A stretch of DNA of 63,240 bases, the filler included, from Bigelowiella natans CCMP2755 (Eukaryota > Protista > Cercozoa), in NCBI GenBank assembly GCA_000320545.1. It is 12 parts of 12 records of this genome, joined end to end, with 100 filler letters (N's around TTAATTAATTAA, not from the genome) between each part and the next. Parts side by side here need not be neighbours in the genome. Positions count along the whole stretch, not along the records: positions 14,232 to 38,711 come from ADNK01000629.1; 11 more parts are not named here. One strand, given 5' to 3'. Shown piece by piece: positions 14,082 to 32,737 of this stretch; positions within the stretch are counted from its first letter, which is position 1, and each line of letters starts with the position of its first letter. A program made the translations under genes and the position numbers. Under the pieces are notes generated by a model. It searched no databases. It had not been told where the DNA came from and saw only the letters and a list, made by a program, of their open reading frames with translations.

Positions 14082-14424
14082 CGTTGTACGACTATGTAGC
14101 TAGAGAGGGGCGGAATTTATGTGTGCGTGTGNNNNNNNNNNNNNNNNNNNNNNNNNNNNNNNNNNNNNNNNNNNNTTAATTAATTAANNNNNNNNNNNNN
14201 NNNNNNNNNNNNNNNNNNNNNNNNNNNNNNNTAAAAAAAATGAGCACATATGTGTGTGGTAGAAGTGAAATATCCTATAAACCAAGCTACGACAAGCACA
14301 TAGGGGAGAACTCCTCTACGATCAAATTTCCCTTTAAGACTACCAACATTAGATCTACCCCACCCCGCTGAGTTACCAGCGAGACTTTACAGAACCACTC
14401 TAACCCGCCTCTCACTTAAAGAAC

Positions 14425-14807
14425 ATGAGTATGGAAGCCAAGGAATCTTCGGGATGCGACAAGGCGACCGAAGCCGTTCTTGTAAAATCTGAAGACATGC
14501 CCGAGGGGACCCCAGAGTAGTGCGAAATAAGAAGCAGTATGTTGGTGTGTGCTTTTCCCAGATCCTCCTCAGTTTCGAAAATGCCATACATGTAGGTGTA
14601 AAGGGTTCGATTTCTATAAAGGATTAGAGTAAGATGCTCTCTTCAAGTAAGTAATATAGGGATCCACTCACACATACCCTCCCTCGCTCCCCCACGCCCG
14701 CACTCTTATACGTACGTGTGTAGGTCACTCACACTCTATGTATCTCTAGCTACACATTTTGGTTTGGTTGTGGGGTGGCTCTCTCGCACGGTGACTCACA
14801 CCCCAAA

Positions 14808-14878
<71 letters not shown>

Positions 14879-16778
14879 CCCATTTGTTATTTTCTGAGTA
14901 GTAATCTGAGAGAAACCACCACCACCACCACCACTACCAGTTACGATGGAGACTGAGTCATCAAAAGTTTGACCCTAACAAAGAAACAGAGGAGTTTAAA
15001 GATAAGCAAGGTATTATTATTATCATTATTCCGTACTCATCAAGTCTAGTACAGCTGTGGTAGTATATTCTACTATGAGTCCTCATCCAACTTATTTTTA
15101 CTACTACTATAGTTCGTGAAAATACAAGGTGCACCATCTTTCTTGGATATACCTCCAATATGGTAATAATATAGTCAGAACTTATTAAATATTTTATATA
15201 ACCTTCTTGTAGTCTAATCGGCTTATTGTCTATAATTAAAGGTCAGCTGCGGAAATAGAGAAATCATCCGCTACCTCATGCAGCATAGAATGGTACGTTT
15301 ATTAATCTTCGATTCTAATGTGTGGTCATCTCTATAAACTAGTAATCGGGTTCTGTTGTATTAGATCAACTGTGTTGTCACAACCGGGGGAGCAATAGAG
15401 GAGGACATCATGAAATGTTTCTTCCCTCACTACATGGGGGTAATTAGAATAATGATAATAATAACACTAAGTACTACGCAACAATGCATCATTATTAGGT
15501 AGTAGAATGTGAAACCAACACAATTCACAGTGTGACTAATATTATCATGAGCTGCTCATATTTCTGCTGCACATGTCTTCTAATGGTAGTCGTAGTAGTA
15601 GTGCTAGTAGCAGTGCTACTACTGCGGCATATCAGCAGACTTAGTGTGCTGACTCGTCGCATCATCATATTAATATTATTGTGGTGCTTTCTGTACGTAG
15701 GACTTCAAACTTCGGGGAAAAGATTTAAGGTGGTGCCCCCCATTCTAAAATCACGACTTAGACTTCACGACGACGTGCACTTGGCACCTCTACTAATACT
15801 ACTACTGCTGCTGCTACTACAATCGGAATAATTTTGCTACTATAACTACCACTACTACCACTACTACTACTACCACTGTTATCTAGACTCAAAGGATTCA
15901 ATAGAATTGGCAATCTTCTGGTAAGTAAGTAAGTTGTACTACTATCACTGACAAACAACTGAAATAATAACACATACGGTGTGATTGGATTGAGCTCAGC
16001 ACTACCTCATCAACATACAGACAACTACGGCTACGCTACCATGTTGTGTGATGTGTTTCTTTCTTCTGTGATGATGACGATGATAATGATGATAATGATG
16101 ATGATGCAGGTCCCAAATAAGAACTATATTGCATTTGAAGACTGGCTCAAGCCAATCCTCGGTCTGTGTGTAGAGGAAGAGGAGGAAGCACAACTTTTCT
16201 TTTAGCAGCAGTCAATATTAAATAAATCTCTTGATGATTGATTGGTGATTGATTTATTTATGTATTGATTGATTCTACAGCAAAGATGCTAGATGAGCAA
16301 GAGCCTACCGTTCAAAACGTAACAATCCTTAAAAAGCACTTCTCTAGGATGATGCTAAGAACATGCAAAGGTAGATCTTATATTACAACAAATCCCAAAG
16401 TTGTGCATCTTGGCATCCTAATCACTTTGCGTGGAAGACGTGTACATTGTTATGTTAAAAGGCAAATGAATATAACGTGTATCATCAATCATCATCATAT
16501 AACTTCATCATCATTATCATCATCATCATCATCATCATAGCTGGAACAATGATCATCGAATCGGAAACATCCAAGATCAAAGCCAAATCTACAGTCAGTT
16601 GTTACATTTATAATCATTTGTTGTATTATTCTCGGTTACCTAACTAATTTACCACAACAATAAAGATTTTAAGCATAAACGACATTGCAATGACTGGCAA
16701 AATGGAAGAGGGTATTATGATAAAATATGATCTAATTATGATAAGAAATAACGAGAACTTGATTTTGAATCAAACTCG

Positions 16779-16809
<31 letters not shown>

Positions 16810-18001
16810 TATCATCATCGATTACAGATGTAAAAAGCTTTCTCGATAAGATAAGCGGAGATAATTCAGAAATAAAACTAACGGTATTATTATTATTATT
16901 ATTATGTGTAATCAAATTAGTGTAGTTCTAATTTATATCAACTGGTCTTTCCATCCCTCCCATATGACAGCCAGCAGCAGCATCAATTTCAATATACATC
17001 CTTGCTACTTGATGATGCATGATATGTTGTTTTCCAATATCCATCATTGCTACTTACTACTACAACAGCTTTGGGTGCCTGGAGAAGTCTTTTCTCCATC
17101 CAAAATAATAAGACGCATGGTACTACCAATACTATTACAACATCATTTCTTCTTCTCTCCCAATCGATCTCAGTGATAATATGATTTCCAAGTATTGTTG
17201 TCTGTTGTCATCATATGTATCATCTGCACTTTGAAAATAACAATAAGGGGAAAGAGATTGATAATAAAGACTCCATTCTGTACTGGGTAGTATGTTATTC
17301 CTTATTACTAATAATAGTACTACTGGTAGTAACAGCAGCAGCAGCAGCAACAACAACAACAACAACAACAACACCAGTTTGAAGATAACGACTACGACAG
17401 ATTTTTGTTATAGTGATGCGTATTATTCCTTCTGTAGCCTCTGCCTCCATTGATCATCGATTCACCACCACCACCACCTTCAGCAGCATTACTTACTTAC
17501 TTACTTACTTACTATAATAAAGGCCTACAAGAATGATATTCCCATTTTTTGTCCAGCAATAACTGACGGGTAGTAGCAGCAGCAGTTGTAGTAGAAGTTT
17601 ATATAGTTATAATACTAAATAGGATAAATCGCTGCACGTTGATGATGATGATGATGATGATTGTGATTACTAGTACTGATTAATGGTAATTAATAACCTT
17701 CTTCAGTGCTGTTGGAGATGTGGTATTTTTCCATTCCTACCAAAAGGAAGGTGATAAGACTCTTGATATATACATCATGGATGATGACCCTACTTCTCTG
17801 CCCACAGTTAGAATACATGAACGTTGTTAATGTAACACTACTAGTACTACTAACTATCTTCTCTTGTTCTGCCCTCTTTCCTAGCTACTTACATACATTC
17901 TTACATGTATTTATTTTCAATTACATGTATTTATTTTCAAAGGCATGATCATCGATACTGCTCAGGACATCAAGAAAATAAATGGTGCTGGTGAATATAT
18001 G

Positions 18002-18057
<56 letters not shown>

Positions 18058-18570
18058 TTATTTGGAAGAAGCAGCTGTTTGTTCTGTCTCCCCCCTGTTT
18101 CTTCTACTATTAACTACTAGGACTGACTGCAGGACGCATGTAGTGATATTATCGTGTTGTTATTGTTGTTGTTGTTGTTGTTATTGTTGTTGTTGTTGTT
18201 GTTTGTGTGGCTAGAAATGGCAATGAATGCTCCTAAGACAGGAATGATTATTCTCGGGGGTATGTATGTACTACAATTATTAGAGATGATAAAAATGATG
18301 ATATTCCTTAGATGAAAAGATTGTGCTCAAAATTATATACCATTAATATTGTGAATGGTTGCTTTGTTTGGTGAAAATTGATAATTGATAGGAGGCATTG
18401 TAAAGCATCATATCTGCAATGCCAATCTTATGAGAAATGGTAATGATGATTCTCATTATTGATTCAATGTAGTATTAATAACGATAAGTCCTTCCACTAC
18501 CCAACAACCGCCTCATCACCATCAGTATAGCTACAACAACAACAACAACTACTATTGACCTTAGTGCTGA

Positions 18571-18638
<68 letters not shown>

Positions 18639-19128
18639 CAAGATGCAGGAGTCATCACTAGTTGTCAAACGCAGCAGAGAAAAATAATCATCCTCACTTA
18701 CTACCACCACCACCACTACTACTTTGTGTTACTACTTCTACAACTACTGCTTGCTGGTACTACTATTACGATTACAGGAGCAGACTTTTCAGTGTTTGTG
18801 AACACTGGCCAGGTATATCAATCAACAATATATCAAAATCAAACCATAATTAATTACATTTATTAAAAACCAACATGATATTTATTCAAAATATTATTTT
18901 ATTCTCAATCATCTTCCGTTTGAATTTCTTTGTATAATTGACTTGTTGTCAATTTAGCCTGGCTATTACAATCATGTGTGTAGGAATTTGATGGCTCAGA
19001 CTCAGGAGCTCGGCCTGATGAGGTTAGGAGGAGAATGTGTAGTAGATATGTAGACGACTGATGGGTTAATTAGGAGGAGAATTTGTAGGTATGTAGACGA
19101 TGACTACTACATGTTATTATTTGTTGAT

Positions 19129-19165
<37 letters not shown>

Positions 19166-19318
19166 TACTACTACTACTACTCTGCATGATTATCATTTTT
19201 TAGGCTATATCATGGGGCAAAATTCGTCTAGATGCTAAGCCTGTGAAGGTAGGAGATATTCAATGGATCATTCTTACCCCTCCTCTATTCGGCCTACACA
19301 AAGTCACATATATATTCT

Positions 19319-19357
<39 letters not shown>

Positions 19358-19489
19358 ATATATATATAATGTACATATCAGGTTTACGGAGATGCATCTT
19401 TGATATGGCCCTTATTAGTTTCCCAAACTTTTGTGAAATATATTGAACAAGCATCAGCAAATGAGGAGACAAAAGGAACAACCAAATAA
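14425..19489 (+). CDS. DHPS: Deoxyhypusine synthase, 25 exons, with ~80-aa insertion
   Basis: Phase-consistent GT-AG chain: [97 protein letters not shown] (catalytic Lys kept), VYGDASL; stop TAA 19487-19489. Exons 2-3 carry apparent base-call errors. Confidence 0.97.
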
Positions 19490-19692
19490 GGCGTGCTTAG
19501 GCGTGCTTCATCGTGCCTATTCGCAACTTGCATAATTTATCACAAATAAGTAAGTATCACATGGTGATATGATGGTAAAGCATATTCACTTCACGGTGGT
19601 CATACGCATAGGCAGTGGACATACCATCTAGTTAGCCAGGCCATCATGGAGTCTAGAGATGCGCGTGAAATCATGCTAATATATAAGACGGA

Positions 19693-30790: not shown

Positions 30791-32737
30791 ACGCTGTTTA
30801 CCTCCTCTCGGAGCCCTTTTCTGTTTGGTTGAAGCATAGCATAATGATAATAGTAATAATATTTGTACTAACTATGCCCTTCCAACCAACTATGGAAGGA
30901 CGGAATAAAGGAAGAAATACAATGACAGAAGGAGAGACAAAGGATTAATGAATAAATAGCTGTTATCTATCATCTTAATAATAATGTCTCATTGCTTATA
31001 ATGTTCAAGGACGCCCTAAACGCATGGCAACTAGTTCTTGAGCTGAAGGAGGCTCTTAATCTCCCAGCTGCTGCTTCATTCAAGCACGTTTCCCCAGCTG
31101 GAGCAGCCGTAGGCGTTGAACTCGACGAAGTCCTTGCAGATGTATATGATGTAGATGCAAAGTCACTTACACCTCTTGCTGCTGCATATATTCGTGCTCG
31201 TCATGCTGACCCCAAATCCTCTTTCGGAGACTTCGTTGCTCTTTCTGATAAGGTACTCTACTTATTTGTCTTGTGCTGCTGCTATGAGTCCAGTCATCAT
31301 TCACATATAGTAAATTGATTACAAGCGTAACTTAGGCCGCTGCTGAGATGATAGTAGTACCAATTAGACACTTATACTTACTAGTTCTACAATCACTACC
31401 AACACTATTTGCTGGTGTAGCTTCTTTCTTGTTGTCACAAAGCAGTTCTTTCTTATTATTACACAGCTACAACAATCCTTTCTTATATTTAGTGATGTTA
31501 TTACATTCATAGTGACCATTCACTCACTAACTCACTCAGGTTGATGAGCAAACTGCGAAGATCCTCAAAAGAGAGGTAAGTGACGGTATCATTGCTCCTG
31601 GGTATGATGAAAAGGCCCTCGAAATACTAAAGCAAAAGAAAGGAGGAAAGTACCTCATCTTGGAGGGAGATGTAAGCTACAAGCCGCCAACAAATGAGTA
31701 CCGAGAGGTCTATGGTTTAGTATTTGCTCAAAAGAGAAATGACACCGTCGTTACGAAGAAGATGTTCGAAAATGTTGTAAGCAAGAACAAAGACTACCCT
31801 GACTCAGCGGTCATTGACGGCATTCTCGCAACAATCTGCGCAAAGTAGTAGTCATTTTTTGCCTGTAATAAACAACAATTTGATGATGTATGATGTGCAT
31901 TTGTGCTGCTTTAGCGGAGTGGTGAGGATATTGATCACTCCTTTGTTGTCTTCCCCGAACCCTTCTTATTATTATATTCTATCATCATCATCATCATCGT
32001 CATCATCATCAGGTATACTCAATCCAACTCAGTCGGTTTCTCCAAGGGTGGTCAGATGGTAGGTGTAGGTGCTGGACAACAAAGTCGTGTTGATTGTGTA
32101 AAGTTGGCAGGATCCAAGCTGCGCATCTGGTCCCTTCGTCAGCATCCAAAGGTGAGGGGTCTTAAATTCAAGAAGGGGATTAAACGTGTTGAACGCTTAA
32201 ACGCCAGACTCCAGTATATCGATGAAAACGACATGACGGGGCCTGAGCGTAAGGCATGGCTTCAGTATTTCGATGAACCTCCAAAATCCTTAACAGAGCA
32301 GGAGAAAAAGGACTTTCTCAAAGATGATCTTACTGGGTAGTACCAAGTAGCAGTGTTAGTAGTAGTAGTAGTAGTAGGTGTGACAACATCAGAAGACTAC
32401 TCATCATCATCTAACATAAAGAACACCACATAGTTTTATTGCAAATTATTCATTATGCACAATACAATGGTGTAGCTGTATTTCCGTGTACTGCATTGTT
32501 TCTACAACCTACAATGTACTTATATATTGTATATATATATATATATATATACGAAGGGTTACTCTGGCGTCGGATGCTTTCTTTCCTTTCCGCGATAACA
32601 TCGACGTAGCAGCCAAATTTGGAGTGAAATACATTGCACAACCAGGAGGAAGTACTCGTGACTCAGCTGTCACTTCTGCTGCAGATGAGTACGGAATGGT
32701 TATGGTGCACCACGGCATCCGAGTGTTCCACCACTAA
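30220..32737 (+). CDS. purH: AICAR transformylase, monofunctional (no IMP cyclohydrolase domain)
   Basis: MAESN..NLK|[14 protein letters not shown]|[12 protein letters not shown]|[36 protein letters not shown]|..[13 protein letters not shown]|[24 protein letters not shown]..|[27 protein letters not shown]. Confidence 0.95.

Follow-up and report, generated by a model that had tools for sequence, protein, structure and literature searches.

Deoxyhypusine synthase (DHS) starts the hypusine modification of eIF5A through the NAD-dependent transfer of an aminobutyl group from spermidine. To our knowledge, this enzyme is essential, is very conserved, and has a single known substrate, and most eukaryotes have one plain copy of it. 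The stretch of DNA analyzed here (63,240 nt from the cercozoan Bigelowiella natans CCMP2755, assembly GCA_000320545.1; below, the window) contains a DHS gene, at positions 14425 to 19489 on the + strand, whose product has 82 residues in a loop that is about 7 residues long in the human enzyme.

Additions to DHS have been described in other lineages. The enzyme from Plasmodium vivax has a 40-residue insertion (residues 224 to 263) aligned with human helix alpha-8 (PMC11637365), and DHSc from Leishmania major has several insertions of at least 15 residues (PMC7581365). These are likewise lineage-specific insertions in the middle of active DHS proteins; they are modelled as coils and have no known function, and what they are seen to share with the B. 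natans insert is a mid-protein region. In diatom DHS (P0095 from Epithemia and about 120 others) the insertion lies at exactly the same loop as in the window protein, after K-M-x-D-E-Q, and these are also its best full-length matches among the retrieved proteins (390 bits). The diatom inserts, of 20 to 32 residues, lengthen the preceding helix and continue as an acidic coil; they have no detectable similarity to the window insert, which contains strand-like segments and has three times their length. Because insertions occur in the DHS of diatoms, P. vivax, and L. major, this loop appears to be a recurrent place for additions.

Genomes with two DHS genes are also known. Trypanosomatids and Entamoeba have pairs of diverged paralogues, DHSc and DHSp, in which DHSp is a dead “prozyme” (PMC3663545, PMC7581365). 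The B. natans genome likewise has two diverged DHS paralogues, but both keep the catalytic lysine and the cofactor motifs, and neither is prozyme-like. A different division of roles is found in homospermidine synthase, a DHS-derived enzyme that has lost the use of eIF5A and takes putrescine as the acceptor; we know of no diagnostic residue set for this enzyme.

Gene structure and transcription of the insert

The window gene has 25 exons, 24 GT-AG introns of 72 to 338 nt, and 452 codons followed by a TAA stop. The exon model was built from splice sites and from the joints in transcript contigs of three runs (X1, X2, and X7), which come from three studies of the same organism and were analyzed, together with one raw RNA run, over positions 14300 to 19600. 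The joined translation, compared by local scripts and numbered through an alignment to human DHS in the PDB, is homologous to DHS (Pfam PF01916, DS) along the whole domain and matches P0095 at 390 bits (E 4e-137, local BLAST). Single exons gave weak matches to P0095 in the genome scan, and the Pfam DS scan of the genome listed the second paralogue alone, the window gene being absent from it because its exons are only 9 to 36 residues long.

The window enzyme and human DHPS (PDB 1DHS, 1RLZ, and 8A0E) have the same domain, the same order of motifs, and the same catalytic and eIF5A-contact residues. They differ in Ala for Ser240 and Phe for Tyr305, in the length of the loop between Gln194 and Trp201 (82 residues versus about 7), and in the 24 introns of the window gene. 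The equivalents of Glu137, Asp238, Asp243, His288, Asn292, Leu295, Asp313, Asp316, Glu323, Trp327, and Lys329 are all kept, and the active-site residues Lys329, His288, Trp327, Asp243, and Glu137 are located in exons 7, 18, 21, and 24. The catalytic lysine (Lys329; numbering from PMC10042821 and PMC7581365) is encoded at 19219 to 19221 on the + strand, within an SWGKI motif seen in the translation of exon 24 and in the alignment to P0095, and the codon for His288 is at 18406 to 18408 (+) in exon 21. The eIF5A contacts Asn173 and Tyr176 (exon 10) and Leu295 (exon 21) are also kept. The codons for Asn173 through Tyr176 occupy 16116 to 16127 (+) and, in the PDB alignment, open the helix that ends at the insert. 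Mutation of these two contacts, Asn173 and Tyr176, abolishes hypusination (PMC10042821, which also describes the roles of the other residues). The window gene is an expressed DHS that, judging by its residues, is predicted to be catalytically competent.

Between KMLDEQ and FSPSKII the window protein has 82 residues, 76 more than the canonical loop. The insert lies between the equivalents of human Gln194 and Trp201, where a loop follows the helix that starts at Asn173/Tyr176. Among the retrieved DHS proteins that contain both an NYxxFEDW-type and an MIxRLG-type motif, the segment from the first motif to the second is 23 residues long in the canonical form and 42 to 55 in diatoms, compared with 99 in the window protein. 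The window insert is the longest among the retrieved DHS proteins and the only one with strand-like runs. An AlphaFold model of P0095 (pLDDT 83) has a helix at residues 224 to 258, a coil, and a second helix at 279 to 290, which suggests that the insertion site is the tip of a helix hairpin that tolerates additions.

Five exons on the + strand, each flanked by AG and GT, encode this segment, and when joined they form a single open frame running from KMLDEQ through the insert to FSPSKII. Exon 11 (16281 to 16370) contains the last conserved residues, KMLDEQ, and, from 16301, the first 23 insert residues; it is found whole and without differences in the X1, X2, and X7 contigs. It is followed by three micro-exons, exon 12 (16541 to 16593; 53 nt), exon 13 (16666 to 16711; 46 nt), and exon 14 (16828 to 16883; 56 nt), the last of which encodes a helix-like segment. 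Exon 15 (17069 to 17119; placed at 17068 to 17118/17120 in X1 and X2) supplies the last 7 insert residues, up to 17089, and then the FSPSKII helix. The contigs skip at least 15 stretches that start with GT and end with AG and therefore derive from spliced RNA. Among the joints that they contain are 16160>16280 and 16593>16666; the latter (GT..AG) and a joint leaving exon 13 at 16711 were found in all three runs, and exon 12 is also covered by depth in the bin from 16424 to 16600. X1 and X2 have 154 letters between 16370 and 17068, which equals 53 + 46 + 56 minus one letter that fits either side, and exactly 56 contig letters stand between exons 13 and 15, matching exon 14 with its AG and GT borders. 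X7 has 115 letters for 15438 to 16280 and 588 letters, plus 2 ambiguous ones, for 16370 to 19380, and both counts equal the exon sums of the model. The raw RNA run, with only 34 reads located mostly at the 3′ end, adds nothing. A shorter in-frame form, spliced from a donor after 16318 to 17069, is possible on paper; none was seen in the contigs, which show the dominant form alone. The insert is real and is part of the dominant mRNA.

A first-pass annotation of the window, made from the sequence, had proposed five phase-compatible exons that add about 80 residues at a place where the human loop is short, in an enzyme with intact catalytic Lys and His motifs. The exons are borne out by their splice borders, by the frame, and by spliced contigs from three independent studies (exon 14 by length and frame), and the position agrees with the alignment, in which the human loop from Gln194 to Trp201 has about 7 residues. 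The two motifs were recovered in the exon translations and in the alignment to P0095.

The surrounding eukaryotic DNA is AT-rich, and its short introns are rich in microsatellites; the 24 introns of the window gene interrupt 1.36 kb of coding sequence, or about one per 57 nt. Tracts of (CAT)n, (TA)n, (CA)n, and (CAA)n pack the introns (for example, at 16480 to 16540, 16775 to 16825, 14815 to 14875, and 18560 to 18635), and those of (CAT)n beside exons 12 and 14 are found again at no fewer than 40 other loci. An open frame at 30992 to 31315 (+), about 11 kb downstream of DHS, matches the AICARFT/IMPCHase bienzyme of purine synthesis (purH; E 1.9e-12).

The second paralogue and other deoxyhypusine synthases

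Scans of the genome with Pfam and with P0095 found exactly two DHS loci. The second is on the + strand of contig C2723 of the genome (G000) at 40679 to 45419 (positions 2680 to 7420 of locus L005) and has 13 exons and 349 codons. Its loop is of canonical length and its catalytic lysine is intact; an intron of 1.4 kb lies just before the M-I-E-R-M-G helix. The two proteins are 57.7% identical. Only four intron positions are shared between the 12 of the C2723 copy and the 24 of the window gene, which suggests extensive gain or loss of introns since the duplication. In a sparse tree, the two copies are sisters (support, 88/87), with a branch of 0.75 for the window copy versus 1.06 for the C2723 copy. 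A loss of catalytic residues like that of DHSp was not found in either copy, both of which keep the lysine and its surrounding motif. One eIF5A locus was detected in the genome, a count that is a lower bound.

A degenerate C-G-N-R-E-I-I-R-Y-L pattern retrieved three environmental DHS contigs, all with a canonical loop. L019 and L020, from a freshwater metagenome, and L021 encode DHS with the S-C-G-N-R-E-I-I-R-Y motif common to both B. natans paralogues; L019 and L020 have in-frame TAA/TAG codons and are ciliate-like, and L021 is intronless. Two tandem DHS units were seen in three retrieved proteins, P0001 (608 residues) and P0152 and P0163 (about 735 residues; from Taraxacum and Tagetes). The two Asteraceae proteins may be fused gene models or neighboring genes for DHS and homospermidine synthase.

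Composition, origin, and relatives of the insert

The insert is not low-complexity. It has alternating hydrophobic runs and one or two amphipathic helix-like segments, and a crude periodicity analysis places helix-like stretches at insert residues 9 to 20 and 55 to 61 and strand-like or hydrophobic stretches at about 3 to 8, 23 to 28, 31 to 46, and 68 to 74. Its GC content is 38.6%, with 41.5% at third codon positions, compared with 42.1% and 42.9% for the rest of the coding sequence and 33.3% for the introns. This composition, like that of coding sequence and unlike that of introns, argues against very recent exonization. Because the insert is not low-complexity, has the composition of exons, and contains regular hydrophobic runs and helix-like segments, it most probably forms a small, folded alpha/beta module projecting from the surface of the enzyme.

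The first-pass annotation had described the insert as acquired. This is unproven, with no donor found in the genome and with the borders of the insert located inside exons 11 and 15 and not at introns. Such borders are not like simple exon shuffling, although the intron turnover in the gene makes this a weak argument. No DNA duplicate of the insert exons was found in the genome, where only the intronic (CAT)n repeats recur. An internal duplication of DHS sequence was considered and rejected, as the best local score of 35 was equalled by 94 of 1,000 shuffles.

A search of representative proteins with an exon of the paralogue gave 150 matches, none of them from B. natans. A word search with P0095 gave only diatoms among the matches listed, with more than 7,800 DHS clusters ranking above the B. 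natans protein. Database searches with the read-through open reading frame of exon 11 and with an alignment (A2) of the PDZ-like family described below were blank, and the exact pattern of the junction between exons 13 and 14 matched nothing in metagenome contigs.

Exon-by-exon Pfam scans of the insert gave no families at E values up to 10, and genome scans with PF00595, PF13180, and PF17820 (PDZ, PDZ_2, and PDZ_6) matched other loci and not this contig; the genome scans have low power on exons of 15 to 18 residues. The genome scans revealed a family of predicted membrane proteins (L025, L027, L030 to L034, and L037, on several contigs of G000) whose compact PDZ-like domain, about 72 residues long, follows a hydrophobic segment and has a G-W motif in place of the usual G-D. 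Pfam identifies this domain as PDZ (PDZ_6, E 1e-5 to 3e-7). The family includes open frames of up to 850 residues, so not all genes of this genome are split into micro-exons.

Competing readings of the insert

The best overall explanation, and one that we consider probable, is that the window gene encodes an expressed and competent DHS, one of two paralogues, with a folded module in its loop. The surface hairpin loop between the equivalents of Gln194 and Trp201 has lengthened from about 7 residues to about 82, and the added coding sequence comprises the 3′ end of exon 11, the 5′ portion of exon 15, and the three micro-exons between them. The module would be attached to the helix that holds the hypusination loop of eIF5A with its first turn (Asn173 and Tyr176), at the opposite end of that helix. 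The enzyme would still make deoxyhypusine on eIF5A, and the module would provide an additional surface for docking or regulation, used by eIF5A, by a partner, or in assembly with the second paralogue. A narrower form of this proposal, in which a peptide- or ligand-binding module (PDZ-like or ferredoxin-like) sits in the hairpin beside the eIF5A docking groove of an active DHS and gives a lineage-specific docking or regulatory input, is unlikely on present evidence.

In the first-pass annotation the insert was a PDZ-like domain, and no described DHS-PDZ fusion was known; our literature search likewise found no paper on such a fusion. The PDZ assignment is not established, given the blank exon scans, nonsignificant local profile tests, and the absence of a GLGF-type loop. 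As a degenerate PDZ domain grafted into DHS, the insert would recruit a C-terminal or internal partner peptide. Its length of 76 to 82 residues suits a PDZ domain, the termini of which lie close together, as befits a loop insertion. A local profile made from eight PDZ-like domains of the genome, which are themselves PDZ by Pfam, scored the insert at 1.8 bits, above 97% of shuffles (65 of 2,000 matched it), and hhalign placed insert residues 30 to 76 against family columns 27 to 71, in register and nearly gapless (P = 0.059; probability, 0.9%). In this C-terminal half the insert follows the same order as the family profile: a strand, an I-x-I-N-D-type strand, a helix, and a final strand. A full PDZ fold has five to six strands and two helices, and its peptide groove runs between beta-2 and alpha-B. 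However, neither score is significant, the alpha-A region is shorter than in PDZ domains, and helical periodicity appears where strand beta-2 is expected. No carboxylate-binding loop of the GLGF type (x-hydrophobic-Gly-hydrophobic), which in PDZ domains precedes strand beta-2, was found in the insert, and the corresponding stretch of exon 11 has no glycine; the PDZ-like family of this genome keeps a G-x-G-F-type loop. With the Pfam results given above, these points leave a PDZ domain as a possibility well short of probable. The periodicity fits a PDZ-like order and a ferredoxin-like beta-alpha-beta-beta-alpha-beta order about equally. Another small alpha/beta fold of the latter kind, such as an ACT- or RAM-type module with a ligand-sensing regulatory role, would agree with the size of the insert and with the order suggested above (strand, helix, two strands, helix, strand), and modules of these types are often fused to metabolic enzymes; we nevertheless regard it as unlikely, as the periodicity analysis is crude and the exon-by-exon Pfam scans gave no match. 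The insert could also be a loop expansion that is tolerated but does nothing by itself, which we think rather improbable. The loop is a hot spot for such inserts, as in the variable and partly acidic, low-complexity diatom segments and in the P. vivax and L. major proteins, no homologue or donor of the B. natans insert was found, and its micro-exons are flanked by microsatellites. Against expansion alone, the insert is not low-complexity, its hydrophobic runs are regular, its composition is exon-like, and its frame is kept across four introns in all transcripts seen.

Several observations weigh against a functional DHS with a folded module. Searches of protein databases and metagenome contigs found no orthologue with the insert. 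The contigs represent the dominant isoform only and are not quantitative for expression. Exon 14 lies in a masked bin between two microsatellites, where the depth is 0 and the contigs appear to join 16711 to 17068; the flanking repeats masked this exon, and exact length and frame are the support for its inclusion. Finally, codon 43 of the assembled gene, in exon 2 (14630 to 14632, +), is an in-frame TAA, where homologues have Tyr (human Tyr42). Truncation of the protein at this codon would break the gene and leave the insert without consequence, but this is very improbable. The TAA is the sole stop within the 452 codons, and replacing only its third letter, by T or C, would restore Tyr. It lies about 400 nt from the start of the contig, where the transcripts depart from the assembly: the X7 contig differs from it at three letters in exon 2, and all three runs show three differences in the 5′ untranslated region, including one letter omitted at 14363 and A>G at 14393, whereas exons 3 to 25 are free of differences. 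The transcript is also abundant in three studies. The codon is probably an assembly error at the contig end or a strain difference. An alternative code in which TAA specifies Tyr or Gln was rejected, since there is one internal TAA compared with about 11 ordinary Tyr codons, and TAA serves as the stop codon of both paralogues. It is quite unlikely, too, that the window copy has become specialized relative to the canonical paralogue, whether by joining a heterotetramer, as happens in trypanosomatids and Entamoeba, or by using a different acceptor, like plant homospermidine synthase. There are known cases in which DHS paralogues divide their roles, and the presence of two diverged sister copies beside one detected eIF5A locus (a lower bound) would suit such a division. 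However, neither copy has lost the catalytic Lys or the motifs for NAD and spermidine, in contrast to dead DHSp; of the two, the window copy is on the shorter branch, and it retains its eIF5A-contact residues.

The insert is genuine and transcribed. It occupies a loop known to be variable, in a DHS that is otherwise intact, and is probably a small folded module, for which the PDZ label is unproven. If it is only a tolerated loop expansion, it would be an ordinary case, one more lineage with lineage-specific DHS insertions beside diatoms, Plasmodium, and Leishmania. A folded binding module in an active DHS would make this the first DHS with an inserted interaction domain, and would illustrate how micro-exons can encode an insert the size of a domain. 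A structured insert by the substrate groove, in a genome that also encodes a canonical paralogue, would offer a natural experiment in the regulation or partitioning of hypusination.

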